This document shows, in pieces, positions 2,496-45,445 of a stretch of 64,000 nt of DNA; positions within the stretch are counted from its first letter, which is position 1; each line of letters starts with the position of its first letter. The notes below the pieces were generated by a model, which did not search any database, was not told the DNA's origin, and was given only the letters and a program-made list of their open reading frames with translations. This DNA is from Lepidodermella squamata (taxonomy: Eukaryota; Animalia; Gastrotricha): NCBI GenBank assembly GCA_047495785.1, contig JBLDXI010000036.1, forward strand, positions 1,054,001 through 1,118,000. The letters are read 5' to 3'. A program made the translations under genes and the position numbers.

Positions 2496-5407
2496 ATGCA
2501 AACTAAAGTTATTTCTTTGATCGCACTGCTATACTGCTCCGCTGTTGCGTACGCGGGCTTACCTCCCAAATTTACTACAACACAGATGTGTAAGTCGAAT
2601 CGGAATTTCTATCAATTATTTATTTACGAACGTAAATCGATCCGTTATTCCTTTATGAATTATGCATCATTCATAGTTCCTGGCGCCTTTTATCCAGGGC
2701 CGACAAGTAAAGGTGGATTCACTAATGTGCGACATCGAATCCGCGGACGAAAGCCGACGGATATTTACGGATATTCATCGTCGTATGCGCACGGAGCAAT
2801 GAGAGGTGCGGGCGCTGAGATAAAGTTGCGCGCGACTATTTTTTACAATTTTTTTATGAGGCAGCAAAACAAAACCGAGAAAAAACTATCTAATCATGTT
2901 TTCTAGTAGGTACAGAGCTGGAAAGAATGCAACATTTCCTGCGAACCAATTTTCTAATTTCCTAACATTTCCTAGCCAAAAATGACTCATTTTCAATCAA
3001 ACTCATGCAATCAAACTCATGCAATTTCTGCATTTCCCGAACGAAAATTTCCTGAATTTCCTATATTTCTCAAAAATTTTCTGCGGACCAGGCACGCGAC
3101 ATTGCATGTTTTCCAGCTCTGAGTAGGGAAGTCGATATTTTCGACACCGATTACCCTACGTAAGCGTGTTTTCATTAAATTTTTTAAATTTTCAAAATTT
3201 ACTTGTTTTCACTCTGCGCGGCTTGTATGTGCGCGCTCCTAACCGTCTCGCGGAATATCGAGTGCGCGTACAACTTGTTTATTTTAATTTTTCGCGCAAG
3301 AACCCCATGTACTTTTAATTGAGAATTTTTTGAATTTTACTTTTGTATAAAAACTGCCATGATTTTCGAAATTTGGCCTTTGACATCAGCGCGCGCGGCT
3401 AACGTTTTGGTGAACATTTTGACTTTCGCTCACAAGTCCACTTTTATGTCCTATTGCCCACTTGATCGGGACACCTAACTACGATGGGCCCGGCCTGGTT
3501 TACCTTCTGTCGGACGACTCTATTCCACTAAAATCGCGCCTGTGATGCGGCACACCGGGTCCATACGACAAAATCCACCTCAATAGGCCACACTTACCCT
3601 AATATTGGGTTAAATATGTTGCGATTGAGAGGGTTGAATGGTCCAGTGATTGCAATTTGCCATCAGAACTTGTGTGATCTGATGAGCGACCATTCAACTC
3701 TTCATAAAGCAGCATTTTTTTGCTTCGCATTTAATATTGTTGATTTGTAGATAATTTTCCTTTTTAATTATTTCAAACTATCACCACGTGTCCCGGCATT
3801 TTTTTCGGGAGACGCTTGAAAGTTACTCAGCTGTAAAACTACGAAAAAAACGGAAAAGCCAATTAAAAATAATTGAATATGGAAAAATCAACAATATTAA
3901 ATGCGAAGAAAAAAAATGCAAGAAAAAGATCACACAAGTTCTGATGGCAAATTGCAATCACTGGACCATTCAACCCTCTCAATCGCATACTCAAAAACCC
4001 AATATTAGGGTAAGTGTGGCCAATTAACCCCGGTAATTGAGTTTTCCGTGGGGAAATTTGGTCTCAATCGCCTAGCCATACCTGTGCATCGCCTGGGGTC
4101 GCGGTTTTTTGTTCTGACATCTACGACAAAAATGGCCGTAGGAAAAAATGTCATCTTAACATGAAACCTCGTTATTGGTTCCAGCTAATTCAATTGAAAG
4201 AGGTCATTTTTACCTCCCTAAACTCACCTTTATACAACAACATGCTGTGACCTCATTTTGGAAGCACATATTCAGGCCCGCCTAAGTTTCCTTCACGCGC
4301 GCACTCTGATTGGTCGGTCACGCGCTCAATGAATAATAAAGGAAAACTTTCGAATTTACCGGCGGTTTTTATATCAAAATGAAATTCATTAAATTTGGAA
4401 TCGATTGAATATGGTGTTCTCGCTCGAAAATTGTTTCACGTGCATTCAAAGTAATGCGCGCACGCACTAGTACTTGTGAGCGTGCGCGTTAAGGGAAATT
4501 CAGACGACAAATTGTCATCACACGTAAAAAAAAATGTTTTACATTTTTCGAGCGAGAACACCATATTCAATCGATTCCAAATTTAATGAATTTCATTTTG
4601 ATATAAAAACTACCGCGAATTTCCGAAGTTAGCCTTTATATTGCGTGTGTGCACGACTTTAACTTGTGCGCGCGCAATTCCGTCCTAAAGATTCAATAAA
4701 TTTCAATTTCAAATGATTTATTCCATACGAATTTTGGATAAGATTATTTAGTTTTTACTGCTCTGTCCAATGTGCTATCACGATCGTGGAAAAAGTTAAT
4801 TATAAAAATAAATTGGGGTATAATTCGAGATTTTGTTAGCTCGCGTTTTGCGCGCGCTCACACGTGTTGCGCAATCGCGCGCACAAAACTCCAGCCAATC
4901 AGAGTGCGCGCGTGGAGGAAACTTAGGCGGGCCTGAATATGTGCATTTTAGAACATAGCTGGCTACAAATGTTCAGGCTTGTAGAAGGCTTGTCCTCGTA
5001 TCGTCCTCGTAAATTTTCGTAGTTTGGCCTAAGAGTTTTCGAGCCATCGATAAAAACGCGAAAACCTCGATTTTTGGCCAATTAGCCCCAAAGGTTCATT
5101 TTGCCCCAAATGACGGTAATCTTTGACTCGTTCGCTGATTGGTCAATTTATTGTTGCTTTGACTCCGGGATGAAACAATTTAGTAGTGCGATCGCTAATA
5201 AATTATTTTATACACCCAGAATTTCTACTATTTAGCTCCAGCAAATGCATGGACCTATTCGTGGTATGTTCAAGCCGCCAATAAGCCAACCGAGCCGGCA
5301 ACAAGTATGTGTCATTAACATTTTCATCTTGCAGATTTTTTCTGCGTTCCTAGTAATTATTTAAATAGCTATAATATTCATCATCGTGGCACTCGAGCAG
5401 AGAGTGA
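2496..5407 (+). CDS. Small secreted micro-exon protein, family copy A1 (possibly degenerate at the 3' end)
   Basis: Signal peptide MQTKVISLIALLYCSAVAYAG. Exons 2496-2589, 2677-2706 (30 nt), 5236-5304 (69 nt), all phase 1. The last-exon homologue (~5388-5407) lacks the AG acceptor seen in paralogue A2. Confidence 0.6.
2913..3121. mobile_element. hAT-type MITE
   Basis: TIR CAGAGCTGGAAA/TTTCCAGCTCTG; 8-bp TSD AGTAGGTA/AGTAGGGA (7/8). Confidence 0.75.
3586..5118. mobile_element. DNA-transposon-derived dispersed repeat (second copy at ~43097-43863) with an internal hairpin 3586-4021
   Basis: Shared sequence ending GGTTCATTTTGCCCCAAATGACGG-TA in both copies; inverted arms GGCCACACTTACCCTAATATTGGGTT. 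Confidence 0.65.
4264..4944. mobile_element. Mutator-type MITE nested in the previous repeat
   Basis: Long TIRs GCACATATTCAGGCCCGCCTAAGTTTCC; 9-bp TSD ATTTTGGAA/ATTTTAGAA; the empty site is visible in the 43.7-kb copy; a partial TIR also at ~45249-45291. Confidence 0.8.
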
Positions 5408-7609
5408 ACTTGACATCTTCATTGCTACCGAATTTATTTTTTTCCAAAATTATTTCATTCTCGATTATGATATAAGAGCGCGCGCAAAAATTGAAGCCAT
5501 GAACACTTTGCAGTATAGTATATGCAAATGCATGTAAAAAATGCATATTCTTTATAGTCGTTTCGACATTTAGTTGCTAGTTTAAGTATAGCAGATACGT
5601 TAATTTCAATCCGACTTGAACACTCGATCAGCGCAATTATTCGCGTGGTTCACAATAGGATTTCTAAAATTCTGTGTTGACTGCAAGGTCTCATTGCAGT
5701 TGAAGATAAGATGAAGAAGTTGCTAAATGAATAGTTGTCGTTGTATCTGAAATTTTATTTTTATCTCGTAAAATCATACATTTTTTTATTCTTCAATCAG
5801 TTCATATATTCATCACGCTCAGATGCGTCGAAAATATGTTCAATATCTTTAGCGGCGCGCCAAAACAACCACTTTACTATTTATAGATTTTATATGGATA
5901 GTACGATCGAGAGTAGAAAAAAATCAGTGCTCAAATGGCCTATGGTACTTTATCATTACGTTCGGCGACTTCAAGTACGATCGAATGAATCATCTAAGTG
6001 GTTGTTTTGGCGCGCCGCTAACGATATTGTCTTTTGTGACCTCGGTGTTTAGGTTTTTGTAAATGTGACGGCAAACGACGTCATTCACTTCAAGGACTTT
6101 GAAACTCTCTTTCAATAACGAGTTTTTCGTACGGAATATCAGTGTAAAGTAATGTATAAGGGCTGTTATCATCAATGTTATAGATGGCGGCTCTATATAG
6201 AATTCTCGCGCCACGAGTTCATTCCTGGTGCTAGTAGGTAGATTTAGAGCTATAGAAGAGCTATAGAACTAGAAATTAATTAAAAAATTAAATTAATTAA
6301 ATTAATTAAATTAAAGACAGACTTGAATGCCATTAACCCTAATAGATGATGTTTCAAATCTGTAACTTCCAGACCTAATTTTCACGTAATAAAAGCTCCG
6401 AGAAACGGTTTCAGAATTGAAGATTTCGAATTTACAAGCCCTGCTCGTCGAAATAATCAAATCATCGATCAGTCCGAGGCAAAGGTTCTCGGCCAAAAAT
6501 TCTTAAAATTGCCGAAGGTTCATGAATAAAAATGGCAAAATTGCAGTAGTTAGTTTAGTCGATTAAAATTGGATAACTGAAAATACCAGACAAATCGTCA
6601 AATCAGTCGATTGAATTCCTTAAAATAAGTTTATCGACTTAGCACAACAACAAAATGAAGGTCCGATTCAGAGCCGATTAGATCTTATTTGCACGAACCT
6701 TGCCTGCTCTAAGTGGCTAAATCGGCGATGAGTAATTAAATGTGTTGAATAATGACGATGACTTGTCCGAGCCTGAACCCAGGGGCGATCGAAGAGCCTA
6801 GATCGATAGGCATAGTCGCAGTTAAGATGACTCGGGCTGTTTTGATGGCCACCTCGGCCTATAGCTGTGATCGAATCTCCACGATCATTGTTGATAGATC
6901 TTTATTCGCTCATGCCTTTATTTCTAGGTCTACTGATTTCCGACTGGGATAATTTAGCCACCATAGCTACTACCCTCGACACATCTGAGTCTAACAATGG
7001 CCTCGTTAGTATGTGACGTCACCATGCCAACAACTCATCATCATTATCAACCAAAATCATGTCGTTTAAGTTCTAATTCGGTATATTTAACACCCAATTC
7101 CCAAGCTATTTTTATTAACATATAATTTCAGAGGTAACGGTGAAACCTTGTCGCAAGGCATTTTCGTTGTTTCGTTGGAGTTGCTGAGATACAATGGATG
7201 TTATATAGATATAGATGGAAAAATAGAACTTCATCTGATGGTGACGGTAATTTAGATAGAAAACGATCGAGGGAATGATGGAAGTTAAGAATACTAATCA
7301 TTTATAGCCTGCCGTTGTTTATTTTTGCATGTGTTATGTGAGACGGTATGAAAGGCATGTGTTAGCGGGTGTCCCATACCTTTTCCAACTTTGTTAAAGC
7401 TTTATGTTGTTAAAATAAAATGATTTCAGGCGGCGGGAAGAAAGCATTTTCGTTCACTATAAAAGGCAAATGTCACGGGCTCCAACAAAATTCGTTTTGC
7501 TTTTGTCGTCCGGTCACGCAATCCACGCAATTTGGCTTCTCAGACTATACGCTTAGCCGATGGCCTCTATCCACACAGCAATTGGTATAAGTAACTACGT
7601 GCATTGAAG

Positions 7610-7759
7610 CAGGGTGCGAAGTAGGATCCGGGAGCTGAGGTGTTTTCTACTTATTTTCTAGGACCCAACCGAAGAAACCAAAGGGTCCCCCCTGTGGTTT
7701 TTTCAGCCTTCCTCTGGTTGGAGTCGCGACACCCCAGCTTCCCTTTACTTCGCACCCTG
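7610..7759. mobile_element. hAT-type MITE (150 bp)
   Basis: TIR CAGGGTGCGAAGTA; perfect 8-bp TSD CATTGAAG (7602-7609, 7760-7767). Confidence 0.85.
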
Positions 7760-8478
7760 CATTGAAGTAAAACATGTGCATGATCTTTCTTTCGCGGTAT
7801 TAATAGATGCAAATTGCCGTTCCTGGCAGTTCTTGGACTGTTTCCGATGTGGTTGACAAGACCTGTTTCGACCTCTCAACTGTTTACCTGCATCCTAGAT
7901 GCTACCTATGTTGTCATGGTTTTCTTTCAGAAGCAATATTCAGGTAAGATTCTTACATGGTAAGTTGTCGGCTGCCCACAAGGAAGCATCTAGCATAGGC
8001 TACTTTAGCTTCACAGAAGTTCCTACCGCATTAATTTCTTGTGATCCACCTTCATAATTGAAACATTTCTTGCTTACATTCTCCGGTTTCTTACAGTATT
8101 TAATAACACAAAAACAAGTTAAAGAATTAATAAACCGATAAAAATTATAAGCGCATTTTCTCGAAGAGCAGCGCTGCAAAAAATGCACAAAAAACAACAA
8201 AGCACCATTTAACATTTACCACTAAAACTCAGCTTTTACTATAATTCAAATTTACTAATAATTCATCCTACTATGGCTACATCCTACTATAGTTGTTGTT
8301 GCCGCTATATGCCATCGCTATTTACATAGCGTTATGCGTTATGCCGTTGATCACAAGGTATAGCGATGATCGCGCGGAAAAACATCGACAGCTGATATCA
8401 CTTTTTCACGTATTCGCTGTAGTATCACATCATTTCTTCACTTTTCAATTTTATCTTCGAGCATCTAATAATTATTTA

Positions 8479-8852
8479 GGGTAACTATGCCATACCTGTT
8501 ACACGTCCTAACTTGTTACAATCCGTCGTTAAAGCCACGTAGCTCCCCCAAAGTAATAGATATACCATTAATATTTTTACAAATTTTGGCTCAATTTGAG
8601 GGCCACGGATTGAGGGCGCTAGGCTCACTGTAACAAGTTAGGGCATTTGGTACCTGTGCGACCTAACCCACTTTGCGCGCCCGCTGTTACGCAACCATAA
8701 GTGACAGCAATGCGAGCTTTGCGTCATTCGATAGCGCGTCTGTCATAATAGGTGTGGTGCAAATTTTGTGCGAAAAACTTATGAAATGAGGGCGCAGTCG
8801 TAAAAATAGCGCGAAAAAGACGGTTTTTGTAACAAGTTAGGCATAGTTACCC
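8479..8852. mobile_element. MITE inserted just upstream of family copy B1
   Basis: TIR GGGTAACTATGCC flanked by TA; absent from paralogue B2 (~36920). Confidence 0.8.
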
Positions 8853-9561
8853 TACCCGTGGATAAAACAATAGTTTCTTGATCGCAGTGCTATGCTGCCT
8901 GGCTGTTGTGACATGCACGGGAAAAAAAAACCCATGAATTCATCGACCTGCCACATGAATTAAGTGTCGTCCCATGAATTCAATTACACTTTTTAGCAAA
9001 ATTTTCATGCGCATGAATTTTTTATTGAAACATTTAAAATAACTTAATCCATGCTGGTGAATTCAGGGCTCCAACAATTAATTAGTTTTTATATTGTTAA
9101 TTAGGCAAAAAAAGTTGTGCATATGCAAATGAGCTGTGAGGATGAATCAAGTCCCATCCTAGAACCACTACGTTTTTGAAATCGCGTTCAACTTATTATT
9201 TTTTTCTACTATCAATAAAGTGATACCATCTGCGATTGAATATTAAATTTTCTGAGGTTACTGTCGACACGCTTTCTGGTGTAGCTACTAGAACGCGCAC
9301 ATTGGCTCATTAAATTACTAACTTTGCAACTCTATTTCTCTTAGTAGATTGGTTTCGCGTTGACCATATACGCGCTGCGGCTCATTAAATCAGTCCGTTT
9401 TATTCGAAAAATATACAAGTTTAGCTTAGGCCTTCTGCCACATTACAACTTGGTATACTTTAAGAGCGTTTCCTTAACGTTTGGTGGTATTATCAATAAA
9501 GAGTTATCTTTTCGATTAATTCAAAGCCTCATCTGCTGAGGCCCCCCTCTGCTGATAAGGT

Positions 9562-11979
9562 ATGGCCTATTCACGGCCTAATTCTCGAGGCCAGCCTCGA
9601 GGCTTAAATCATAATGTTAACGAAAGACATCTGAATCCGAACGATCACTACGATGACCGTTTCGCCCAAGTCGAAAGACGTCTCGAAAAAGTTGAAAAAA
9701 TGTCAGGTCAAGTATCATCGATCGAAGCTATGCTGACACAACTCATGTCGAAGCTACAACCCCAGGGTTCTACCGATCCACGAGACCGTCAGAACATCGG
9801 TCACCCCAATGTCTCGAACCACACTTTGAACCAACAAGCCCCAAGCCACGACCGTCAGAACAACAGGCAACCCATTGTCTTGAACAACGATTTGAACCAA
9901 CAAGCCCTAAGCAATGACTGGCAACATGACAGTTATGCCGAACACGTTGATAATGACTTTAACGATGGCTGGAGCTCGGACAACCACGGTCATAGTCGCC
10001 CTCAACGCCTAAGCCGAGAACAATATCAAGTTTCGACTAGCAACAAGTATGACGCCCTAGCAGGTCAAACTGATGATGCCACGATTCAGGAATTCCTGGA
10101 AAACCGAATCTTGGCTTCGGAGCATTTAGACCCTCGCAAGGTCCATGAAAAACCGCACCAAGATCGATCGAACCAAGCTTTCAATCGAAATAGTCGTCAA
10201 GCGGCTGGCTATAAGTCAGGTGACACATCTTTCCGCGAAGCTGATAGACCCGACCGTAAGTCGATCAGCAGTGGATCAAACGACTCCCGCGAAGAGATTG
10301 AAGGAAGAAGAGGCGAAAGTGCGCCCTTAGACGTCGGAAGCCCGAAAAACTTGCCGAAACCGGCCGGAGCAAAGAAACGAACGAAAGGCGGACCAGCATC
10401 GCCACCTGACCAGACCGACCCGAACGACAAGAAAAGAGCTAAGGCCAATGACGGGCTCGCAATCGTCCGTTGGACAGCTAAAAACTTTGGCAACTACCTA
10501 TTCGATTGGAGATGCATACACACTGACGAAGAATTCGAAGAAGCATGGGTTTGCGAAACGCAAAGTTACTACAATCAAGCAGGTAGTCCAGAAGACAAAC
10601 TGAAACTACTGTTTGGAGCCCCGAGTAACAGAGCTGCGAGCAATTTTTACCAAACCTTGCCTAAGCAAGGACAAATCGAAATCGTCACAGCTATTAACAG
10701 GCTAACCCCGGCTGAACAAGTGAGGATGCATATTGCGTTCGAGAGAGGAAACGGCGGGACAGCTCCGACTGAAGACCAGTACGTCGAAATCGCCCCAGGA
10801 GAGAAGGCCCGACTCACGAAATTCGTAGAAGACCTTAAGGCGGCAAGAACCGTGAACGAGCATGTCGACCCCGACTCCGACGAAGATGACATGGAAACTA
10901 ACGGCGAAGAAGCCGTATCGGAACAGGAAGAAGAAAGTGAAGATGAAGAAGAAGGAAAACGGAAAGAGCCCAAACCACCACGTCAGCCTATGGGTTGGTT
11001 CATCGATCGAGTACAAGGGTACACGAACAAAAGGGATATACTCGAAGAACTTGAGCGAATTGCACCAGATATCGAGTTGAAGCGAGTCAGCCGCTTGGAA
11101 AGAGGAGGCTTCTTCGTGCTCCCACTTGCCAAAGACCGCGAAAAGTGCGACAAAATATTCGCAGAGGGTAACGTGCCAAGTGATGCCTTCAAAGGCCAGA
11201 AGATTTCGATTCATCGTCCAGGCCTCCAAGGTCGTGTCATCAGCCCCGAAGAAGCGAAAAAGGTTGTTATCAAAAGCGTCGACCGAGAATTATCGATCGA
11301 AGATTTGAATTACTTCTTGGAAAAAGCCGGTTACCACCCGACTGAAATTTTCTGGCTCACACCGGAGGGCAAGCCAACAGGGCTTGTCAAAGCCGTCTTT
11401 GCAACGGAAGAAGAAGCGAAAAAACTGAAAGAAGCCGGAAGGATAAAGATGGCGTCTGTCGTGTACTACACAACCAGCTCCGCTCCCAAGCCGTCGGTAC
11501 CACAGTGCTTCCTCTGCAGAGCCTGGGGCCATGTGCAAGGTGCGTGTCAAGAAATGACCAACATGGGAAAAGATGCCGCAGAAACCGAAAAGGTCAATTC
11601 GCTTCGAGTCTGTGCTAAATGCGGTGAAAAAGGGCACCACCACTCAAGTTGCGTATCCGAAGCACCTAAGTGTATAAACTGCTCTGGTAATCACGCTGCC
11701 ACCTCAAAGCAGTGCGAGACCTACCTTGCAGCCCGCAAAAAACGAGACGAGGATACCAAGAGGGCCGAAGAAAGGTACTTTGGTAAATCATCCAAATCCT
11801 TCAAACCGGCACAGCCGCCAAAACAGAACCCCTGGGAAAACAAGGTGAAAATTGACCACTTGAAGGTCATCATGACTGTGATCGGCCAAGTCCTACCCAT
11901 GCTTCAAGAAAAGAAGTTGAACGAAAAGAAAATTTCTGAACTCGTCAAAAGCGCTCTAGGCCTACATATACGTTCATAG
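9562..11979 (+). CDS. LINE ORF1 gag-like nucleic-acid-binding protein (805 aa)
   Basis: Three zinc knuckles CFLCRAWGHVQGAC, CAKCGEKGHHHSSC, CINCSGNHAATSKQC preceded by an RRM-like segment; N-terminal coiled-coil-like stretch and a 22-aa tandem duplication. Confidence 0.92.
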   Translation: MAYSRPNSRGQPRGLNHNVNERHLNPNDHYDDRFAQVERRLEKVEKMSGQVSSIEAMLTQLMSKLQPQGSTDPRDRQNIGHPNVSNHTLNQQAPSHDRQNNRQPIVLNNDLNQQALSNDWQHDSYAEHVDNDFNDGWSSDNHGHSRPQRLSREQYQVSTSNKYDALAGQTDDATIQEFLENRILASEHLDPRKVHEKPHQDRSNQAFNRNSRQAAGYKSGDTSFREADRPDRKSISSGSNDSREEIEGRRGESAPLDVGSPKNLPKPAGAKKRTKGGPASPPDQTDPNDKKRAKANDGLAIVRWTAKNFGNYLFDWRCIHTDEEFEEAWVCETQSYYNQAGSPEDKLKLLFGAPSNRAASNFYQTLPKQGQIEIVTAINRLTPAEQVRMHIAFERGNGGTAPTEDQYVEIAPGEKARLTKFVEDLKAARTVNEHVDPDSDEDDMETNGEEAVSEQEEESEDEEEGKRKEPKPPRQPMGWFIDRVQGYTNKRDILEELERIAPDIELKRVSRLERGGFFVLPLAKDREKCDKIFAEGNVPSDAFKGQKISIHRPGLQGRVISPEEAKKVVIKSVDRELSIEDLNYFLEKAGYHPTEIFWLTPEGKPTGLVKAVFATEEEAKKLKEAGRIKMASVVYYTTSSAPKPSVPQCFLCRAWGHVQGACQEMTNMGKDAAETEKVNSLRVCAKCGEKGHHHSSCVSEAPKCINCSGNHAATSKQCETYLAARKKRDEDTKRAEERYFGKSSKSFKPAQPPKQNPWENKVKIDHLKVIMTVIGQVLPMLQEKKLNEKKISELVKSALGLHIRS

Positions 11980-17466: not shown

Positions 17467-17660
17467 TCAATACCAGTTAATATTTTTGCGCCGAGGCATA
17501 ACTGGGATTAAATCGACCAAGTGACGTATGCGCCATGCGGGAGAATGATCGTTCATGGTCTTATGGCCGAAGCTATCGAAAGATAGTGAAGCTATGTATT
17601 TAATGTTGTCGGCCATAACATCGCCAGCTGCCAGGCAGCGTTGGCCGTGTAGCGTTCTAG
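17467..17660 (-). pseudogene. Possible class-3 lipase gene fragment
   Basis: WRIRHLVDLIPVMP resembles the lipase-3 Rxxh..D.vP.lP motif; no GHSLG nucleophile motif and in-frame stops nearby. Confidence 0.3.
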
Positions 17661-23200: not shown

Positions 23201-24331
23201 ACTACGCTTGTTATGTCCCAGTTTTGAAGAAATTGACGCTTTTGAGGTCGCCGTAAATTTGAAGACAAAAATACGTGTCTTAAGAGAAAGTATTACGCCA
23301 CACATGGCAAGTTCCGTTGATTTTTGAAATTTCTGATTTTTCCCTATTTTATGTAATTTTGTGTTCCACCTCGATTTGCCTCACTTTCATCGAAAATTGG
23401 ACACGCGAGTTTTAAGAATTTACACGAATTTATTGATCCCTAAATAAATTAAATAAATTACACGAAGGTTGCGTTGTTCACTTCGCCAATTTCAATACCT
23501 CACATCGAAATATTGTGTGATTATTCACGAATAATCGCCTGTAACCGGGTTAAATTTGTTTAATAAATACGATAGATTCCGTTTACAGCAGTTTACAGTG
23601 TGTAATTTCAGGTCACATAGGTCACATCAGTCATTTTCGAAGATTTCTCCGCTTACATAGTCATGAAATTCAGCTTGGTCTAGATCCGTATTGCCGTGTA
23701 AAGCCCTATAGCATTTTTTAGTCCGGGAACTCCGATTATCTAGGTCTGTAAAGCCAAGTAACGTGCCTTATAGCATTTTATTGTCCGAAAAATCCATTCT
23801 TGTGAAGCCGTCCACCCACTTTTAACGCCCTCGGCGAATTTTTTACGCCCATACGTATTTAGATAGAACTCGATGTGCTGATCATTTTGGTGAAAACCGC
23901 ATGACGATACGACACTCCTACGCTTGGGCGTAACGCTGGGCGCAGGCTTCACATTTTGCGCGCGTTGTGTGAAGCTGTCAACCCATCTCGCCACCCATTG
24001 TTATGATCAGCGTGCGCGCGCACGCATTAGCGAGAAAAGGAAGAGTCACTTCATTTGCGTCATAGCGCACTTTCCTTTTTTATTTTTCTCGAGCTTCATC
24101 ATAACGATAACTTCCATACAATTTGAACAAAAGCAACAAAAATTTTCGCTGGAATCAGCAGCAGCAGTAAGAGTCAATAAAATATTGCCATGTTTTCAGA
24201 ATTATCGTCTGGATTTTAACAAATATTGAAATATTGTAATGTAGCTAACGGCTTTAACAATCATCGATAAGATCCTGAGATACATCAAGTAAGTATAAAA
24301 TCAAGTATTTCAGACAATTAATAATTTTGAG

Positions 24332-27287: not shown

Positions 27288-28514
27288 GGAATCATCTAAA
27301 ATTCATGTCAAAATTTGAAAGACCCGTGAAATTTCATAATAAAAAGATAAAGATTCCTAATGAATTCAGAATTCAGATGACTTTGAAAAAAACAGCCGAA
27401 ACAAGCAAAATTAAATGCGTTATGGAATCTTTTTTAGGTAACAAACTTCCTTCCACCTTAAAAATCGCTTCGATTAATGAACTTCGATTTGCCAGGGCTA
27501 GTCACGTGTCTCATTCATCTATCAATAATGAATAATGACTCTGAACGAAACGTTATCTCTTAGTTAGTAAAGACATTAGTCGATTCTCTTGAAAATTTCT
27601 AAACTTTAAGTTACCTATTTTGCATGAGGGTTAGAGGATCTCGAAAATGAGATGTGAACTCATGGCGAGAACAATGCGAAAAATTAAAAAAAAATCGAGA
27701 TTTACTATCAAATAAGGCACTTGTTAATGGGATTAAAGATCTGGAGAAATTTTGTCCAATCGGGTAAGATACCGAAAATTACAGAACTAATTACCATCGG
27801 GGTTTTCCGGATTTTCTCCGGGAAAAATAAATCTCGGTTAAATCACGGCTAAAAGACGGAATTTCCTCTCAAATTAACAAAATTTGTGAAATTTCCTACA
27901 AAAAGCTGCCAAGTTAAAAAATAGTTGCCCTACTTCCGGGACACTTAGATTTACTTTCCTTCCCGAATAATATCTAACGGAAAATAATCTACTGGAAAAT
28001 GGTAAATGGGATTGACTTGCGTCAAATTATTCTGGGTTTGTCTGATGCTTCGAAAATGCGTCGGTCTGATAGAAATCAAAACTCTAGTCGGCGCTAGCCT
28101 AAAACTAATCACATTTTTCAGATCAAAAAGCTATATATTTTGGTATAATTAGAAACGCTCTCCTACATGTTTGTCATGTCTCGGAACTTAAATGGGCCGC
28201 ATTAAAGCGTGGAATGAAAAAATGGTGTAAAATGTAGGGTATGGTATTAAAAGCCTAAAAATAAGTAAATGTCTAACCTTCGATTGTTTGCCGAGTCGAT
28301 CGCGTATTTCGACCCATGGCCGTGCGTTCAGCTCTTAGTTTAATCAGATCAATAACAAAAGTGATTAATGAACTAAAACAATAGGAAAATTTGTTATCTG
28401 TTAATTCGTTTGTGAGCTGATAGTAACGAAAATCGATGAAGCGTGGAGGACAATAGGGAAAAGCTAGCTGCGGTAATCAACAAAAATGATTAGGGATGGG
28501 ATGGGAACAGAGTC

Positions 28515-28570
28515 ATAGGATCTCGGATCTCAGGTATAGGATATAGGATATAGGACATAGGACATAGGAT
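28515..28570. repeat. 7-bp tandem repeat (ATAGGAY)n
   Basis: TATAGGATATAGGATATAGGACATAGGACATAGGAT. Confidence 0.8.
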
Positions 28571-29702
28571 TAAGAAATTCTACATGCCCGACAATCATTT
28601 CACCCGGTTTTTTCCTATTACGAGTCCATTTACGCTTTGCGTGATTATTTTTGAGGCGGCTTAGAAGCGCCGCCCGCCCAGCTAAGAGATAGGCGCGCGT
28701 GATCACCGTCGCCATCACGCTACAACAAGGTGCACAGGTGCGCCGGCACCGCTTTGATCACAGCGCTGCCGCTTCAACAATCAGCAAGCTCTGGAGCTGT
28801 ATGGATCTTGATTTCTATCATTTTCAAGTTGATTATCATCTGCCACTGCCATAATATCATGAATATTTCGTCAAAATAACCACTCGGAAACGCCTTCCAA
28901 TTCATCACTTTATTCAGTTCAAATAACCGCGGCCTTGAAAAATATAATGACAGTATGGAATAGAATAATAACAAAATGTAATCCTGGTGCCGAAAAAAAT
29001 AGCATTCATACGCGCCATTACACGAATCAAGCGCGTACACAATGACGCGAACAATGGGTGGCGAGATGGGTTGACAGCTTCACACAACGCGCGCAAAATG
29101 TGAAGCCTGCGCCCAGCGTTACGCCCAAGCGTAGGAGTGTCGTATCGTCATGCGGTTTTCACCAAAATGATCAGCACATCGAGTTCTATCTAAATACGTA
29201 TGGGCGTAAAAAATTCGCCGAGGGCGTTAAAAGTGGGTGGACGGCTTCACAAGAATGAAAAAACCGCCTGCCGATGTCTGTAAAGCCGTGTAATTCGTCT
29301 AACTGAGCTTTACAGTCCCTTAGTATCAGCTGTTGGCAGTCTGGCAGTGGCAGCCAAGTAAAGTGCTTATAGCATGTTACAGTCCGGAAACTCAGCTTGT
29401 CTAGGTCTGTAAAACCGGGTAACTTGCCTTTTAGCAGTTTACAGACCATACTTTCAGCTTTTGACAGTCTGTAAAGTTGGACAACATGTTTTATTGCCAA
29501 TTACAGCAGCAAAAAGCAGCATTTCCACGGTTGTAAACCGCTGTATCAAGCCTTATTTCGAATTACATAGGCGAAAAATCAGCTTACAGCCGGATCCTGA
29601 GCTGGAATAAATCGACATCACAGCACTTTACAGCAAAATTCAGGCAAATACACGATTTTATTCCGATTTACAGAGCCTGCATGATCAATTACAGAGCCTG
29701 CA

Positions 29703-29866
29703 TGAATAACTCGGATTTAAGCTTGTTTACATCCATTTTAAGGTGATGGGTGACAAGCAAAAAGTATTTTGTTTTTTTGCCTCTTCATTCACGTAAAAAA
29801 CCCGCTTTTTACCTGTCACCTGTGACCTTGAAACGGATGTAACCAAGCCCAAATCCGAGTTATTCA
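29703..29866. mobile_element. Small MITE
   Basis: Imperfect ~32-bp TIRs TGAATAACTCGGATTT...AAATCCGAGTTATTCA. Confidence 0.65.
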
Positions 29867-30361
29867 ACGACGCTAACGATGTCCTCGTTATGAGCTTGAT
29901 CCCGAAAACAGCTGGGCGTGTTCTCCTGAATGAGTTCATCCTAGCTCTGTCAGCAATTTCGGCGATCATCTCGATCTATCAGCTATGGGCGAATTTGGTC
30001 TATGAGCCTAAAACAAAGCTTAGCAAGAAATTCGAGAAGAAAATCATTGCTGGTGTGCATGTCATTCAATTTCTTGATGTTGTTTTGGTTTTTTTATTCA
30101 CCTACCCGCCATTTGACCTAATTCTCCCCCCATCAACCATCAAGTTGTTTTCGCGGCTATGCGCCGCCGCCGCAATGTCGAGGGTGCTTATTGACGTAGT
30201 GGCTAGACAATTCGATGTGATCATCGCGCGAAAACAACATCGCCTCAGCCAGGGATCGCGACAGCTGATATCATTCGCGAACCCGTTTTCATGGCTCGAA
30301 GCGCTACTAGCTCATTTTATCACTTATCATTTCGATATTAACTTGAAATATCACTCTTAAC

Positions 30362-31016
30362 ATGCAAACTGAAGTTATTTCTTTGATCGCACTGCTATAC
30401 TGCTCCGCTGTTGCGTACGCAGGCAAGGTTACGACAGCTCCATTGCTAACATGTAAGTCGTACCGGAATTGCTATCGATCATTCTTAACTCTTTCATCTT
30501 AGATCCTGATGGTGATGGCCCAATGGGGAAGAACAGTGAGTGTTGTATCAACTTAGCGCAGTCACTTTTTCGGAAGCGGAGGAAATCGCACAATCGGAAA
30601 AATTATTATTCATTCCAAAAATAATGAACGACAAATACGATATCGCGTTTAACTGTTTTTCAATTTTGCGATCTTTTCCGCGTCCGTGGAAAGTGGCTGC
30701 GTTATGAATCTATTAATCAATCCGTTCCGTTCTGAATTATGCATCATTAATAGTTCCTGGCGCCTTATATCCAGGGCAGACAAGTAAGAGATAGACTTTT
30801 TAATATACCAATCATGGTTTACTTAAACTTAAACTATACCACCGCAGCTCGTTCTGCAGTCAAGCTATTAAAGTCAAGTAAGTGTCAGCTCTACAATTTC
30901 TGATATTGACTCATTTCTTCACACCTCCAGCCGCCACCCAGCCAACCGATCCGCCAACTAGTATGTGTCATTAAAATTTGAAATTAATCACATCAGGACA
31001 CTCGAGAAGAGATTGA
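30362..31016 (+). CDS. Small secreted micro-exon protein, family copy A2 (77 aa)
   Basis: Exons 30362-30452, 30503-30535 (33 nt), 30754-30783 (30), 30848-30877 (30), 30931-30960 (30), 30997-31016; all GT-AG, phase 1. Product MQTEVISLIALLYCSAVAYAGKVTTAPLLTYPDGDGPMGKNIPGALYPGQTTRSAVKLLKSTATQPTDPPTRHSRRD. Confidence 0.8.
30554..30704. mobile_element. Hairpin MITE in intron 2 of copy A2
   Basis: Imperfect inverted arms TAGCGCAGTCACTTT...AAAGTGGCTGCGTTA. Confidence 0.6.
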
Positions 31017-32234
31017 ACTTGACATCTTCAGTGCTACCGAATTTGTTTTTCCAAAATGAATTTTCGTATCAGAGCGCGCGCGAAAATTGAAGCCGTATAA
31101 CGCTGTCATTGTTGCAATTGCAAATGATTAATGATTAACAGTGGCGTAACCAGCTGGTTGTTTTGGTTGTTTAAACTTTAAACAACTACCAAAATGAAAA
31201 CTCAAAACCCCTCTTCGGCCTATTTTCTCTAGAAAATGGCTCAAATTGATTATAACGTGGAGAAGATGTTTTGCAAAATTGCAAGAAATCTTCTCGCCAC
31301 GCTCGAAATCTCAATATTGTCAACATTCCTATTGAAAATAGGCTCTCGTCGACCTTGGATTCCCCAGCCACCCCCGCCACCCCCGTCAGTTTGTGGTATG
31401 TATTACCCATTTTCCTGTCGATATATACAAAACTATTCCGTTACAGTTCGCCGCTTCCTCCTTTTTTCATGGCGGTGCTAAGCACTCAGAAACTTGGATG
31501 ATATGATGCCACGGGCTACTAGCTGGAATCACTTCTTTTGATGGTGACGATCAAGTAAACGGTAGATATTAATTCCATAATATATTCAAAGTTCAAGAGA
31601 ATTATTTATCAATAGCTTGCCCGTGTTTGTTTTTGAGCATCTATATGTTTTATGCTTGACGGTATGAAAGGCATATGTGTTAGTGGATGCCACATACCTT
31701 TGCTAATTTTGTAAAAGCTTCTATTTAAATAAAATGATTTCAGGTGGTGGGGAGAAAGCCGCCTTTGTTTACTATTTACTATTACAGGCCAAGTTAACGC
31801 ATCCAATGTCGCAAGGCCGTGCAAAATTCGTTATTGCGGTACGGTCCCCTTCAATTGAAAAAGAGTGCATTGTGGCATTCCGGAAACTAGAAAATTTGGA
31901 TTTTACAGACTGATTGACTAGTCCATCGCGAGTGAAGAGTCGTTAATTATAAGGTATTAGAGTTGGCTGAGATACCTTGCAGATCCGGATTTGAAAGCGG
32001 GCAAAGCTGGTAAGATTCTCCTTAGACGTTATACAGCTAATAATTTGAAGGAAATAACCTTAGAGATCAACCTTAGAGAGATAAAGATCGAATTATTATT
32101 ATTTATCGAATAAATATCGAATTGAAAAACCCAATGTGTAATGTGAAATTCATCACATCCATGACAGCGCCATTCGGTACAACACAAGGGGCTCATAGCT
32201 TCAATTTTTGGACATTTCGGCAAACGGCCTAATT

Positions 32235-33093
32235 CAGTGGTGCGCAAACTCGGTCGCAAGCGGCCGGTCGAGGCATTTTTTGCGGCCGGCTGGCCTTTCG
32301 GCTCAGTAACATTACATGCGGCCGGTCGAAGCTTGTGCAGTCGGTGATTTGGTATTATAGGGGTACAGAAGGCACCTAGCTCCAAAGTTTTGTTGAGCAA
32401 TCGATAGGTCTAGCCACCTTAATTTAATGGGGTAATTTTTGTAATTTTTTATGGTCAAATAATGGCTGAAATTTGGGACTATCAATGGACTGATCGATGA
32501 ACTATCTTGCTAATTTTGGCGGTTTGTTCCTCCTCGAATGAGATGCCACGAGCTTTTCCACTTTTTTTCAACTTGAAAGCGGCTAAGACAAAGTGATAAA
32601 ACGGAGAGATTTCATAAACCTTGGACCTGTTTTCTATCTGGAACATACATTAAAAATTGCGTTTTGAAACCTTTTTAACCTTTGCCTTTTGACATCATCT
32701 TGGACTGAACTTTGACACAAAATTTTTGGAACCATAGATTGGAACGTGGTACTCGATTTTTTTATTTCAGATGAATCTAGAATTTGAGACTGGTACAAAA
32801 ACAGGGGATCAATGATTTAACCTGAGAAGGCTGGGTTGCATTTGTGGCTTTTGGGTAGTCTGGGTTTTGGGTTTTCTGCATCAACCACCGTAGGAAATTG
32901 GAAATAGGTATTAATTTTGAATTTTGTCGTCGAAATCTTGGTTTAGAGAAAAATGTTACAACGAAAATCAGTTGATTTGGCCGTTGACATTCCGGCAGTG
33001 CGGCCGGTTTAAGACGCCGAGAGTGTTGCGGCCGGTTGGGGACATTTCCGGCCGCCAAAATTGCTGGAGGTAAAATAAGTTTGCGCACCACTG
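32235..33093. mobile_element. Non-autonomous hAT element
   Basis: 16-bp TIR CAGTGGTGCGCAAACT; perfect 8-bp TSD GCCTAATT; subterminal GCGGCCGG repeats. Confidence 0.9.
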
Positions 33094-34179
33094 GCCTAAT
33101 TCCGTCACTGCTTAGAACCGAGCATAGAGACTTGATTTTTCTGGATGCAAACGTTTTCTCGTATTTTGTTCGCAATACGTGAAACGGGAAATGCATGAAG
33201 TAGCCGAGGTGTAGGTTTCGGCGATCATGCAGGAAGATCCGAAAAATCACAGTGCACGAGAGTTCAACCAAAATGCGACAGGGCAGAAAATCTGTGTCTC
33301 GGAGCTTTTCAGAATTTTCAATCAAATGTTCTCACCATAGTAGGAAATAGTAAAGATCGGAAGCTTACGATCCTGCTATAGTGTCAAAATTTAAGGGTGC
33401 AAAGGTCACCCTGTGCAAAGCCAGGTTTATGTACGTTTTTTTTGAGCCATGAACGCATAGCTAAATGTATAATTTTGAATCGATTTTTCAGAAAACGCCA
33501 TTTTTCTATTTTTTCCTGGTACACATTTTTATGCTCTATCTAACGAGACCAGGCTCATCTTCCTAGGACCTATACAAGGTCATCTGGATATTCGCAAAGT
33601 AACTTAAAAAAATCCCGAAGATCAAAATTAGTGGATGAAGTCGGGGCGGTAAAAATTGTAAAAATTTGGTTGGAAAATCCCAGAAAAAATGTTTTCATTA
33701 CCAGGATGGGCTAAGCTATCGAAATGTATAACTTTTATTCCCGTCCGATTTTTTTTGAATTATTATTACTATCTATGGTTCTCACTTTACAACAGTTGCA
33801 AAGTTCGGCCTTCCACCTTTCAGCCTGATGAGGCTAAAAGCTGAAAATCTTAGAAAATACGCCTAATGCGTACACTGTTTATTCCGGAAAACTATTATCA
33901 TAATGACAAGTTGAGCGTTAAGCTGAATAAAAATTGCTAGAAATTAATTCCTAATTCACGTATGACCTATTCGAACTCAACTCATCTTCAATAACAGTCA
34001 ATTTTGCCGTCACATCGAGGGTGCGTATTTGCGTAGCGTCTAGACCCCGCATAATAATGATCACTCAATAACATCGATGGCTGATATGATACGAACGCCA
34101 ATTTTCAGGGCTCGCAGCGCTATCATGTCATTTCATCAATTATAATTTCAATATCCACTTTGAATATCTAGCTATTATC

Positions 34180-35645
34180 ATGGAGAGTAAAGTGTTTTCG
34201 TTGGTGATCGCAGTGCTATCCTGCCTCAGTGTTGTGGCATCTAAACCAGCGACACCTCAGTTGCCGCCAAGTAAGCTTTCGCGAAATGCCTAACGACCAC
34301 ATACTTAACCAAAAAATACCTTATCTCAGCATTTGGATCATCAGTGCCATTGAGCCCGCCGGATACTGCGCGTAATTCCCGAGCTTTTCACTTTTTTCTA
34401 AATAGCATTGTTTTATTGTAGCACCCAGCGCCATCGAGCCAGAAAAGTTGCGGCCGAGTAGGTTTTGAAATACATTTCAATAATTAACTATCAATTCATG
34501 CTAATACAGCTGACGGGAAATCCTCAACGCCGAAAGGTAAGCGATACCCGAACGCCGTCAATTGGTTTTTAAAACTCTGTCTATGCAAGGTAAAATGGTT
34601 CAAGCCGATTACATGTGCGAGAATAAGCCGTACGAAGAATTCAATATGACACTCAATGACGATTGCGTGGGCCGATGTGAGGACGCAAAACCCTGTAAAG
34701 CAGTCCAAGTGCTGCGTAACAACTGTAAACTGTACAAAGCCTGCATTGCAACCGACGAATTTCCGACACCTGGGAGCGTTGTTTTCGTCCGCGAAGGCGA
34801 GTTATCTCGGCCATCAACAAGTATGTATAAAATCCTATTACCTGAAAGTTATTCCTAATTAAAATTATGCTATTTTAGCCGTCACAAAATTTAATATGTC
34901 GCAACGTATGTTACACAAATTTTTACATGAATCTTTCCAAACTAAAATTATGCAACCATAGGCTATATGAACGTCGAATACATGTGCAAGGAAAAGCCAG
35001 ATAATATCTTTGAAGTACCTGACCTTGTTAACTGCGCCAATCGATGCCTAAAGCGAAGCTCGTGTAAAGCCATAAGCTACACTGGCCATACATGCTCAAG
35101 GTACGATAACTGCAACGGCACGGATATCCACCTGGCGCTTGAAACTCGTGTATTTGTTCTCGTCGAATACACCTTATTTTTCAAATATGCACCTCCTATT
35201 TCGAAGACGCCAGGCATGTTACAATCCTCAATACTTGAAATTATTTACAGCAGCTTTTTATTTATTTACAGATGCCGATATCGTTCAGGTTGATTACAAG
35301 TGCGAGGAAAATTCTAGCAGCAGCTACCAAAATACTTCACTGGTCGCATGCAAGAGCAAATGCTTACATATGGAATCCTGCAAAGCTATCAGTTATGTCG
35401 AGGACAGGTGTTCTCTCTACAATAGCTGCAACAATTCAAACAGGCTAGCGCAATACCCGGATGTTGTTTACGTTCGCGCGATGTACATAAAGTATAACGC
35501 TGAGAATCTCTCTCAGAAATCAAAAAATCAAATTTATCAATCGGATGAAAATCCCTTTGGCGAGAGTTACCAATTTGATGGTAAATCATGGAGTGATAAC
35601 AACAGAGATTATGATTTGATTTACAAATTGTTTTCGATGATTTGA
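34180..35645 (+). CDS. Secreted protein, family copy C: signal peptide + micro-exons + three PAN/apple-like Cys domains
   Basis: Exons 34180-34270, 34330-34371, 34422-34457, 34510-34536, 34590-34820, 34879-34905, 34962-35213 (GC donor), 35272-35645; all phase 1. Repeated C..CxxxC..CKA..CxLY..C pattern. Confidence 0.8.
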
Positions 35646-36928
35646 TTTGATTATATTGAGCCCTCTTGATTTACTACTGATTTAGAGTATTCATAACCTC
35701 GAAATTCCCCTTGTTACTAAACATGAGCGCTCACATTTGCCACGAAAACACCTGTTTTCCACTGTCTAGAGCTATTCCACAATTTTTAGACTTATTCTAC
35801 CAAAAGCCACCTTAAAATGTGAAAGAATCCTTAGAAATGCACTGTAATACTGAAGTTTATCTTTGCGAAAGATTTGATTTGATTTGATCTAGACTGGTCT
35901 GACCAGTGTTCCGAATACGCGGGGGAAGAGGAGAAAACGATTGCTTAGTCAACCTATGCTCACTCATTATTGCACGTTATTGCGTGTTTTATGCCCAAAA
36001 AGGACCCAAATCTAAAATCCCGAATCGCTTGTTTCGTCTTAACTATGCATTATGCATGGTATCAGGCTGCAAAGTTTGTTATTGTATAATCTGGTGCAAT
36101 CTATTAACAAGCAATACTTATATGCTTACAATTATATTCAAATAAAATGCTTTTTGGTGGTGGAAAGTGTTTGATTTCCATACAGATCAATGAATTAGTT
36201 GAAGAATTTGTTCAGTATTTCATCTAATGACGTAAGAATTAGTGAGTTCTCCTCAACGATTGTTAGACGTTTACGTCGAGCAGATAAATTTTAAGTTTGA
36301 ACAAAGGTAGACCCATGTCATTCAAGCTAAAAAATTGTCAAATAAGGAATGACCAATGGAATAAAGCTCGGGTATAGTGTGCAGTGTATTGTGTATTGAA
36401 AAAATCCTCCAATCCACCCTAATTACGGCTGATGGACTAGCAAACGGTTTATTCACAACGGCCGAAGGTGTGGACGCGGCGCCTCTTCAAGGTCGTGAAA
36501 TCTGCTGAGGGTGCATTGGGCTATGAGAACTAGATAAAAAGATCTCCTATAAATTATGCCGATTTTCTATGATGAGCAAGGAATTTAGTTTCTAAACTGG
36601 AAGCGATGATAATTCGAGCGAAAGCATTTATTTAATAACTACTGGACATTTTTTATGGCAGTAAAACCAGGATAGATTTATTATCATCTTCATAACAACT
36701 CATTGTCTTCATAACAAAAAATGTTGTTGCCGCTATATGCTACCGCTATATCGATGTTGCTTATTTGCATAGTGTTATGCCGTTGATCACAAGGTAGCGA
36801 TGATCACGCGAAAAAACATCGACAGCTGTTATCGTTCGCTCACCCATTCACTGGGCTCGTAGTAGTATCCTGTCTTTTCTTCACTTTTCAATTTCATATT
36901 CCCTTCGAGCATCTACATAACTATAACT

Positions 36929-37344
36929 ATGGATAAAACATTAGTTTTCTTGATCGCAGTCTTATGCTGCCTGGCTGTTGTAGCATGTAAACCTACTACG
37001 ACATCTCATTTGCCACCAAGTAAGCTCATCGGCCATACTAATTCGTAACACTCATTCTTCACCTATTTATTCCACCGTGGCTGTTGGGGGCATAGAGTCG
37101 AATGGTAAGTGTACTTCGCATGCCTATCACTCTTTCCCCACTCAAAATATGCCATCTTAGGTGATGGAGCCGCCGCGCAATCTGGCAATAAGCAAGCGAC
37201 CCATCAAACAAACGCGAAAGGCCTACGTCTCACATGCCGCGTTGGTAGAGTAAGTATATCACCTCAATGCCTATTTAGCATTCCAACTACATTTTTCCAT
37301 TATAGCGGTCTAAAAAGTATTCCTGCAAAATGAGAAAACATTAA
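36929..37344 (+). CDS. Secreted peptide precursor, family copy B2, with cationic two-Cys C-terminus
   Basis: Exons 36929-37019, (37063-37104, acceptor reads AC), 37161-37249, 37306-37344. Ends GLRLTCRVGRRSKKYSCKMRKH; frame supported by synonymous differences versus B1. Confidence 0.7.
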
Positions 37345-38287
37345 GTCGGCCAGAAATTAGATGAGGATGATAGATTGGCAAAACTTCAAGATAACTCGAA
37401 ATGTAATTCATGTTCATGACATCACCCTGAATTACAAAATAACATTTTCCGTCCTACGTTGAGGATATTATTCTACAATTCATTTCTTCAAACAAAAGAG
37501 TTTTTGGTGGTGGAAAGAAAGCGTCATTGCTTTTCATGAATGTGTAGTCGCCGTAATTCAGCTCTTTGTATGCTACTTGATCGTATGCTCAAGAAAATGA
37601 ACATTTATCCTGCTGTTACGTCAATTTTGAGAGGTTTTGGGGCGTGTTTCAGTTGAAAATCTTCACAATTTCCTCGATTCACTCGTTTTTTGGTCTCTAG
37701 TCACTTTTGAAAATACAGCAAACGATTTTTCCCATCTCCAGGATCCAAGATCGCACCCTGATAGGATCCAATCATTGGTCCGTCAAGGTCGACTGAACTC
37801 ACTGCTGAATTTAAAATTTACATTGGACATGGCTTTTGAGGATATTTAGTTTAATTTTGTTCTGAATCAAAGCGTGCTCAAGTCAGGTCAAAGGCACTTC
37901 ATGCAGCGCCGTGCAGTGCTCGGATTAAGCTGAGCCGCATCTCATAGTCACGCGAAATGCGAAATTTCCAACTGATTCGCCAACTCCAGTTTTGCAAGGT
38001 ATAAATAAATTTAGATAAAACGCGGAAAAGTAGTTAGATGTCTATATAGCGATTCCGATTTTTTTCAAGTGAAGGATTGCTAGTGATTATATCATGGGTA
38101 GTTATCGCATATGACTGATTCTTAACTTAACGAATGAAGCGAAACACGAATGATTTATTTGTCCTTTCATCTTTTTCCAATAATGTCCCTTTCTTTCTAT
38201 CATTTTAAACAAAAATTATACTTGCCGCTACACGCTACCACCGATCAAGGGTTTTTATTTACTTGGAGTCTAGATGTCACATTGATC

Positions 38288-38306
38288 GACAGCTGATATC
38301 ATTCGC
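38288..38306 (+). promoter_or_regulatory. Conserved upstream motif GACAGCTGATATCATTCGC (E-box + GATA-like) of the secreted-protein family
   Basis: Variants at 2393, 8387, 30260, 34076, 36821, 38288; 102-113 bp upstream of the ATG in the five copies without an intervening insertion. Confidence 0.55.
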
Positions 38307-38400
38307 TCACCCGTACTCTGGTCCCGTAGCATTAGCAGTGCCATTTCATTATTTTATTTTTTATTCTTCACTTTGAGTATCAAACTTCTAAACTGCTATC

Positions 38401-38676
38401 ATGCGGACTAAAGTTATTCCTCTGGTCGCAGTGTTATTCTGCCTCGCTGTTGTGGCAAGTTGTTTCGATTACGACGATGGACCCGATTCCGCGGCACCGC
38501 CGAGTAAGTGATACCGCAATGACTATCAATTGATTTTATTTCTTGAATTTTACACCATCATAGATGCTGCTTCAAACTCAACTAAAAATCCACTCAAGCC
38601 GGACACCCTTGAAAAACTTATTCACAAAGTCGTACCAAATATCACGAGTATAATGAAAAAGTTCCGAATTTTCTAG
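38401..38676 (+). CDS. Secreted peptide precursor, family copy D (acidic pro-segment, basic amphipathic C-terminus)
   Basis: Exons 38401-38503 and 38564-38676; MRTKVIPLVAVLFCLAVVASCFDYDDGPDSAAPP-NAASNSTKNPLKPDTLEKLIHKVVPNITSIMKKFRIF. Confidence 0.7.
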
Positions 38677-44960: not shown

Positions 44961-45445
44961 CGAATCACAGATATTAACAGTTTATTAGGCTTCTAAATGA
45001 TTGCCACTCGGCGCCAAATTTAAGGTCCCACTTCATCATTGTGCAGCAAAAGCGGAAAAAACACCGGACTACTTGGGCTGGCTCGATCAGTGGAGTTTAG
45101 ACTTAACATCTTAATATTATGGTCTTAATCGAACTCCCTGAACCGGTTGTCTAAACTGGAGGTATTTTGGGTTCAGGCATGGAGAGGTCTGTATATATAA
45201 TAGCCGCCGGGAAATTTGAAATTTAGCCTTCGTCGAGCACGTAGCGGGCCAATCAGAGTGTGCGTGTGGAGGAAACCTAGGCGGGCCTGAAAATGAGCCA
45301 AGTTAAGTCAGAGAGCGAAGTAGAGATGGTAGGGATAGTAGGTCCCTACCAATTCAATCGGTCCGCAAGGTAAACTCAGTCAAAGACCAAAGGGGCGACC
45401 CTTATGTCGGTTTTCCTTATCCAAACGTGTTCGGCCGTCTTACTA

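Follow-up and report, generated by a model that had tools for sequence, protein, structure and literature searches.

Extracellular proteins assembled by exon shuffling follow a simple rule: phase-1 introns flank both the modules and the exon for the signal peptide. Conotoxin and frog-skin antimicrobial-peptide precursors combine a conserved signal region and conserved untranslated ends with fast-diverging mature parts, and tropoelastin-type and other proline-rich repetitive genes carry one short Pro-rich repeat per exon, in a uniform phase and with skipping that keeps the frame. In the micro-exon genes (MEGs) of schistosomes the exons measure 6–81 nucleotides (nt), most of them 15 nt, and the introns run from 100 to almost 5000 bp (PMC10526429). 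Here we analyze a 64,000-nt stretch of the gastrotrich Lepidodermella squamata genome (the window; assembly GCA_047495785.1, contig JBLDXI010000036.1, called C36 below, positions 1,054,001–1,118,000), which has a GC content of ~40% and holds spliced genes, a long interspersed nuclear element (LINE) and a piggyBac element. An earlier reading of this DNA (the original prediction) had proposed a tandem family of six loci with a conserved secretory leader, MEG-like micro-exons and unrelated mature parts. Our analysis makes it likely that the genes belong to a lineage-specific family of secreted proteins, presumably co-regulated, whose members arose by shuffling of phase-1 exons within an expression cassette that stays constant.

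Five copies of the cassette in the window are intact. Their ATG-initiated leader exons begin at 2496, 30362, 34180, 36929 and 38401 and measure 94, 91, 91, 91 and 103 nt, respectively; by these starts the genes are named A1, A2, B, C and D (Table 1). All five leaders encode a peptide of the type M-x-T-K-V-I-S-L-I-A-V-L-x-C-L-A-V-V-A, a predicted signal peptide with a short polar start, ~14 hydrophobic residues and then small residues (V-V-A or A-Y-A), and all are closed by a GTAAG donor in phase 1, that is, after one base of the next codon. At the sixth proposed locus, 8858, the copy has GTG for ATG, a frameshift, an in-frame stop and no donor, its leader lies ~360 bp from a promoter remnant, and a LINE follows directly downstream; the claim of six phase-1 signal-peptide leaders thus stands for five loci and fails for this one. 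The ~200 bp 5′ of the ATG are conserved among the five intact genes, in agreement with the shared upstream motif noted before, and read as promoter plus 5′ untranslated region (5′UTR).

The genome-wide search with the leader exon that had been suggested was carried out with a model (R1) built from sequence alone over promoter and leader and run on the whole 121.2-Mb assembly of 151 contigs. It returned 49 matches, 34 of them strong (E ≤ 3e-12), so that the family far exceeds six loci. Most matches lie on C36 and a second contig, C42, and the remainder on C54, C30 and C29. The C36 and C42 matches are collinear, with offsets of 316–389 kb, and some pairs are nearly identical; they are therefore taken as duplicated blocks or uncollapsed haplotypes, which brings the number of distinct loci nearer to 20–25, perhaps, than to 34. 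The two contigs may be haplotypes that have diverged, or else copies of a duplicated segment that differ in gene content. Despite the collinearity, gene B lacks a second copy: a search of the genome for one found none, and the only sequence that matched was a repeat (at least 40 copies) at the 3′ end of B. Three further C36 loci (L011–L013, at 993236, 998630 and 1004024) have equal R1 scores, identical leader regions and a spacing of exactly 5394 bp, with putative reverse-transcriptase-like open frames following two of the three, which suggests that they were tandemly triplicated very recently.

Of the 17 loci with a GTRAG after the ATG, 16 have the first such site in phase 1. The promoter core shows at least 80% conservation in a set of 27 non-identical copies, and introns and spacers are unalignable. 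The best-kept promoter blocks in this set are TTATTKRC, CGACAGCTGATATCATTCGC and GCTCGTAGCGCTACCAGCTCATTTCATC, of which the second includes a CAGCTG E-box and the palindrome TGATATCA and the third stands immediately 5′ of the 5′UTR. Two loci, L030 (C36:1328514) and L031 (C36:11962), carry the same promoter block with a longer 5′UTR and another short first exon (MMKLALIFLIV...). As this first exon differs from that of the family, promoter sharing extends past the leader family.

All five intact genes also end in a shared block, TATTCAAATAAAATG-TTTTTGGTGGTGGAAAG, which contains AATAAA and lies 3′ of the stop codons; the layout is AATAAA and then, 6–12 nt further on, GGTGGTGG. Because of the enclosed AATAAA and the position after the stops, we read this block as a poly(A)/3′-end module. 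The same two features rule it out as a last coding exon, so the 3′ motif described in the original prediction is real and present in all five intact genes, though not as an exon end. A scan of the 121 Mb for AATAAA-N6-12-GGYGGYGGNRAG gave 9 matches (control pattern: 3), of which 8 follow closely 3′ of a family leader, so the module is specific to the cassette family. With just 9 matches, the GGTGGTGG context is also ruled out as a general poly(A) signal of this genome. With a looser pattern, 13 of 22 loci show the module, at 275–1277 nt 3′ of their leader. Conservation is limited to three functional-looking pieces—the promoter with its 5′UTR, the signal exon and the poly(A) module—and the middle is diverged or replaced, which speaks for selection on a shared cassette for expression and export.

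Internal exons were curated by hand in A2, B and L043, an A-type gene outside the window (C36:647,500–653,500), and the reading frames were checked on joined translations. Each of the 21 internal exons curated in this way is phase 1-1 with a length divisible by three, and skipping any combination of them would keep the frame, as had been proposed for the two micro-exon chains in the window. The 33/30/30/30-nt chain assigned to the gene at 30362 is present there with good splice signals, each exon being phase 1-1. The 42/36/27 ... 27-nt chain, likewise phase 1-1 and with good splice signals, exists as well; it belongs to the gene at 34180 and not to that at 36929. Gene B comprises 8 exons and 337 codons, its internal exons of 42/36/27/231/27/186 nt are all phase 1-1, and its introns are mostly 50–59 nt. 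L043 comprises 13 exons in one open frame of 424 codons, with internal exons of 36, 27, 42, 39, 39, 36, 51, 33, 696, 36 and 27 nt (11 of 11 phase 1-1). Its intron lengths are not multiples of three, and it contains GTAAG 13 times in the sense direction versus 2 in antisense.

The micro-exons (27–51 nt, with introns of ~50–60 nt) encode peptides of 9–17 residues that form Pro/Thr/Ser-rich linker repeats, for example IPGCPVLQPATAPE, and resemble linkers as in structural or mucin-like proteins. Five L043 micro-exons and the A1/A2 exon are tandem duplicates of one exon-plus-intron unit, in which the exon indels measure 3, 6, 9 and 12 nt and the aligned part of the intron has a 2-nt indel. The micro-exons of A1 are homologous to exons of A2; comparison of these two paralogues was rejected as a means of telling exon from intron because the flanking intron is conserved as much as the exon. 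Chains of micro-exons were scored against dinucleotide shuffles, where a chain consists of exons with a pyrimidine-tract acceptor, a family-type donor, a length that is a multiple of three and an open frame, separated by introns of at least 45 nt. The observed chain is 3 for B from leader to PAN 1 (shuffle maximum 2; reached by 0 of 1000 shuffles, P < 0.001; reverse strand 0), 4 for A2 (maximum 2; 0 of 1000; reverse strand 0) and 6 for L043 from leader to PAN exon (maximum 3; 0 of 300; reverse strand 1). That the shuffles never reach the observed chains argues that the micro-exons are real sequence features, shaped by coding constraint. Their share of the product varies: 123 nt follow the 91-nt leader in A2, 366 of 1275 coding nt (~29%) are micro-exonic in L043, they make up only part of the coding sequence of B, and D has none. 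Tropoelastin-type and proline-rich genes are alike in having a short Pro-rich repeat per exon, all in the same phase, but there is no sequence relationship, and the repeats here are linkers beside PAN domains. In L043 the last exon (3535–3663 of that locus) encodes a hydrophobic tail (…SAATIIATAAAHPLG), which could be a putative glycosylphosphatidylinositol-anchor signal.

The view that the mature parts are unrelated holds only in part: the three large exons of B are PAN/apple modules, many relatives also carry PAN, and the micro-exons of A1 and A2 are common to a PAN-bearing paralogue. These modules are very divergent and lie at or near the Pfam thresholds. Module 2 of B reaches 22.5 bits against PAN_1 (cut-off 21.4) with module 3 just under it, and the relatives L019 and L022 reach 23.3 bits against PAN_2 and 21.9 bits against PAN_3, respectively (cut-off 21.1 in both cases). 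Over 13 modules from six family genes, 8 match PAN_1 at E ≤ 0.01, and the alignment has six conserved cysteine columns, five of them invariant and the sixth occupied in at least 90%. A family PAN profile searched against the PDB found Eimeria MIC5, Toxoplasma MIC4, kallikrein, factor XI and HGF (best 1hky, E 5e-4). The AlphaFold model of B module 1 has a predicted local distance difference test score (pLDDT) of 86.8, and the top Foldseek matches of this model are all PAN/apple (TM 0.6–0.67, probability 1.00, E 0.02–0.1). In a genome search with one module this PAN subtype was found solely at family loci and, within the window, in B alone. Class 1-1 shuffled PAN/apple proteins (plasminogen, HGF, prekallikrein and factor XI, and the apicomplexan microneme proteins) are alike in the PAN fold, in the six conserved cysteines and in the phase-1 introns that bound the modules and the signal exon. 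They are unlike the present family in that its PAN modules are very divergent, are joined by micro-exon linkers and stand in a promoter/leader/3′ cassette that is constant family-wide.

Two relatives outside the window, L017 (C36:787688) and L020 (C42:406339), carry a Thioredoxin_8 domain behind the cassette promoter and leader, with a phase-1 junction; the profile scores are 62.8 and 68.9 bits, respectively (E 4e-17 and 5e-19; cut-off 27 bits). Their closest thioredoxin-like paralogues (at most 66% identity) are L046 and L047 on contig C16, where R1 has no match. The redox motif reads WAPPC or WASPC in the cassette copies versus WCPPC or WCSPC in the cassette-free C16 paralogues; judged by these motifs, the cassette-bearing copies, which are predicted to be exported, have lost the first active-site cysteine.

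The remaining cargo consists of short peptides. The 72-residue precursor encoded by gene D has an acidic stretch before its cationic C-terminus, and the paralogues L018 and L028 share the two-exon structure of this gene. For gene C, the tentative model predicts a peptide of ~76 residues with a cationic two-Cys C-terminus. Conotoxin and frog-skin precursors are alike in their conserved signal and ends and in the D-type order of an acidic stretch before a cationic C-terminus; they differ in that whole unrelated domains (PAN, thioredoxin-like) serve as cargo here and the promoter itself is conserved.

We therefore read the family, with its common cassette and phase 1-1 cargo, as a secretome that one cell type produces, presumably under shared regulation. 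The family would have grown by tandem duplication together with phase-1 exon shuffling or cargo replacement. In each member the constant ends (promoter/5′UTR, phase-1 signal exon and poly(A) module) enclose phase 1-1 exons, the cargo being micro-exon linkers with larger PAN/apple exons, a thioredoxin-like domain or a short peptide. One secretory cell type would produce the members together and release them as components of matrix, mucus, adhesive or defence. The products are presumably matrix, mucus or adhesive proteins that contain PAN domains and flexible linkers, along with a few small peptides.

The original prediction had gone further and seen in the locus a MEG-like generator of diversity, in which combinatorial skipping of symmetric micro-exons yields many secreted isoforms per gene for use in mucus, adhesive, venom or immunity. 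In architecture the likeness to schistosome MEGs is apt: both have a signal-peptide first exon, runs of very short multiple-of-three exons, secreted products (predicted here), multigene families and a tendency to escape automatic annotation (PMC10526429). The symmetry of all 21 curated internal exons and the origin of micro-exons through tandem duplication favour skipping, and the phases would allow it. In the same direction point the reported close kinship of gastrotrichs and flatworms (PMC6468455) and the D-type genes, in which the 61-nt intron is 91–95% and the mature exon 83–89% identical among three paralogues; the latter is suggestive of a fast-changing mature part, but the counts are small and the difference is not significant. 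On the other hand, neither the leader profile nor the word-indexed searches found homology to known MEG proteins, the micro-exon peptides being too short to search alone. The exons of 27–51 nt and introns of ~50–60 nt differ from the 6–81 nt and 100 to almost 5000 bp of MEGs (PMC10526429), and micro-exons are merely linkers in the PAN-bearing members. Further differences are that promoter, leader and 3′ end are common here to members with unrelated cargo and that the host is free-living. Moreover, the same phase rule applies in ordinary shuffled extracellular modules and in elastin-type genes. We regard skipping as the source of diversity as rather unlikely. What remains of the parallel is the signal exon, the symmetric micro-exons and the tandem family, whereas homology and the micro-exon share of the coding sequence in most members do not bear it out; the family is MEG-like by architecture and not by descent.

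A number of observations weigh against a functional, co-regulated secretome. The signal peptide was called by eye alone, and the resemblance of the promoter blocks to consensus forkhead, bHLH and GATA sites is a tentative one. Searches were done exon by exon, with the word-indexed ones filtered for length at 0.55–1.75 times the query. The leader-peptide profile, run against 1.84 billion representative proteins, gave six matches and no member transcript or homologue; the six were rejected as homologues since they are multi-stretch repeats within long unrelated proteins, hence spurious. Word-indexed protein searches with D exon 2, B PAN 3 and the double-PAN stretch of L019 returned nothing, although these blanks are limited by the word indexing and by the length filter, which placed the 337-residue full B protein outside the B search (at most 330 residues) and inside the L019 search (at most 357), and are not proof of absence. 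A metagenome scan with a degenerate leader pattern had no match either. Family members may thus be expressed weakly, at certain stages or not at all. Damage is also evident in several of them: the copy at 8858 is by its lesions a clear pseudogene fragment, A1 is spread over ~5 kb by insertions with its terminal exon not located and may be decaying, the terminal exon of A2 was not located in the list of candidate exons, a repeat lies at the end of the B open reading frame, and a piggyBac-type element sits in the D 3′UTR, 54 nt past the stop, where it separates the stop from the 3′ module.

These points would suit an alternative in which most copies in the window are duplicates that are dead or decaying, with conserved ends that stem from recent duplication or gene conversion: the 8858 pseudogene, the kilobases of insertions in A1 and its missing stop exon, the 3.3-kb transposon in D, and protein-collection searches in which no transcripts turned up. 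Yet the ends are conserved and the middle has diverged beyond alignment, which fits selection and speaks against youth. Long open multi-exon frames persist in B and L043 (337 and 424 codons), all exon indels are multiples of three, and the six cysteine columns are kept across the 13 PAN modules. Wholesale decay is an improbable account of the locus. Slightly less probable still is the view that each gene moves, or is copied again and again, as one unit running from promoter to poly(A) module, with ends that serve copying and not expression: units do occur on several contigs and both strands, with some promoter-only fragments and the three equal-scoring C36 copies 5.4 kb apart with identical leader regions, but the alignments inspected had neither terminal inverted repeats nor target-site duplications, nor any sharp border of homology, the 5′ block has the look of a promoter plus coding leader, the 3′ block holds AATAAA, and retroposition is excluded because the family genes keep their introns.

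Table 1. Positions, strands and supporting evidence of the cassette genes and the inserted transposon in the window.
Feature	Position in window	Strand	Evidence
A1 promoter/5′UTR; leader exon (94 nt, GTAAGT donor, phase 1)	2298–2495; 2496–2589	+	R1 C36:1056298–1056588, E 6e-61
A1 micro-exons (two, 30 nt, phase 1-1)	2677–2706, 5275–5304	+	BLAST blocks A1 vs A2; alignments
A1 3′ module (AATAAA + GGCGGCGG)	7414–7440	+	Genome-wide pattern match C36:1061414–1061440; alignments
Degraded copy, promoter remnant; leader remnant	8298–8482; 8846–8917	+	R1 E 7e-12 and 4e-6
A2 promoter/5′UTR; leader exon (91 nt)	30165–30361; 30362–30452	+	R1 E 1e-72
A2 micro-exons (phase 1-1)	30503–30535 (33 nt), 30754–30783 (30), 30848–30877 (30), 30931–30960 (30)	+	Chain test
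A2 3′ module (AATAAA...GGTGGTGG)	31728–31754	+	Genome-wide pattern match C36:1085728–1085754
B promoter	33999–34179	+	
B leader exon (91 nt)	34180–34270	+	Frames, splice sites
B micro-exons	34330–34371 (42 nt), 34422–34457 (36), 34510–34536 (27), 34879–34905 (27)	+	Frames, splice sites
B PAN exons	34590–34820 (PAN 1, 231 nt), 34962–35147 (PAN 2, 186 nt), 35272–35645 (PAN 3 + stop, 374 nt)	+	
B 3′ module	36141–36167	+	Genome-wide pattern match C36:1090141–1090167; alignments
C promoter; leader exon	36736–36928; 36929–37019	+	R1 E 2e-50
C tentative exons	37096–37104 (9 nt), 37161–37249 (89 nt), 37306–37344 (39 nt, stop)	+	Splice signals only
C 3′ module (variant AACAAA...TTTGGTGGTGGAAAG)	37482–37517	+	Alignments
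D promoter; leader exon (103 nt, phase 1); exon 2 with stop	38223–38400; 38401–38503; 38564–38676	+	R1; sequence
piggyBac-type transposon (putative family), 3312 bp	38734–42045	.	TTAA duplication, 13-bp terminal inverted repeats CCCTCTAAGTCCG
D 3′ module, displaced by the transposon	42093–42120	+	Genome-wide pattern match C36:1096093–1096120

The element in D looks complete and has transposase-like open reading frames at 39697–41698, its family being assigned by reading; the paralogue L018 retains the empty site. At the end of gene B, the last ~35 nt of the frame and the sequence beyond (35611–35697) belong to a short repeat with at least 40 copies in the genome, and an insertion may have rewritten the B C-terminus. 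An interstitial array of ~15 copies of ACCCTA, telomere-type TTAGGG on the opposite strand, lies at 45445–45531.

Cassette genes are easily missed by gene predictors, so the published gene set probably under-counts them. It seems doubtful that a constant cassette which repeatedly took up unrelated cargo (PAN modules, a nucleoredoxin-like domain minus its catalytic cysteine, short cationic peptides) also carries arrays of tandemly duplicating symmetric micro-exons with alternative skipping, and so acts as a MEG-like isoform generator in a free-living animal from the phylum nearest to the flatworms; if true, micro-exons as a strategy would be either older than parasitism or the product of two separate origins. 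Research on MEGs treats them as a means by which parasitic flatworms vary their secreted proteins, and a similar gene architecture in a gastrotrich that lives freely would permit a direct test between an origin before parasitism and convergence. The family itself offers an unusually clean natural case in which exons are shuffled while promoter, leader and 3′ end stay fixed, and the promoter block is a possible handle with which to find and label one secretory cell type in a phylum that has almost no molecular tools.

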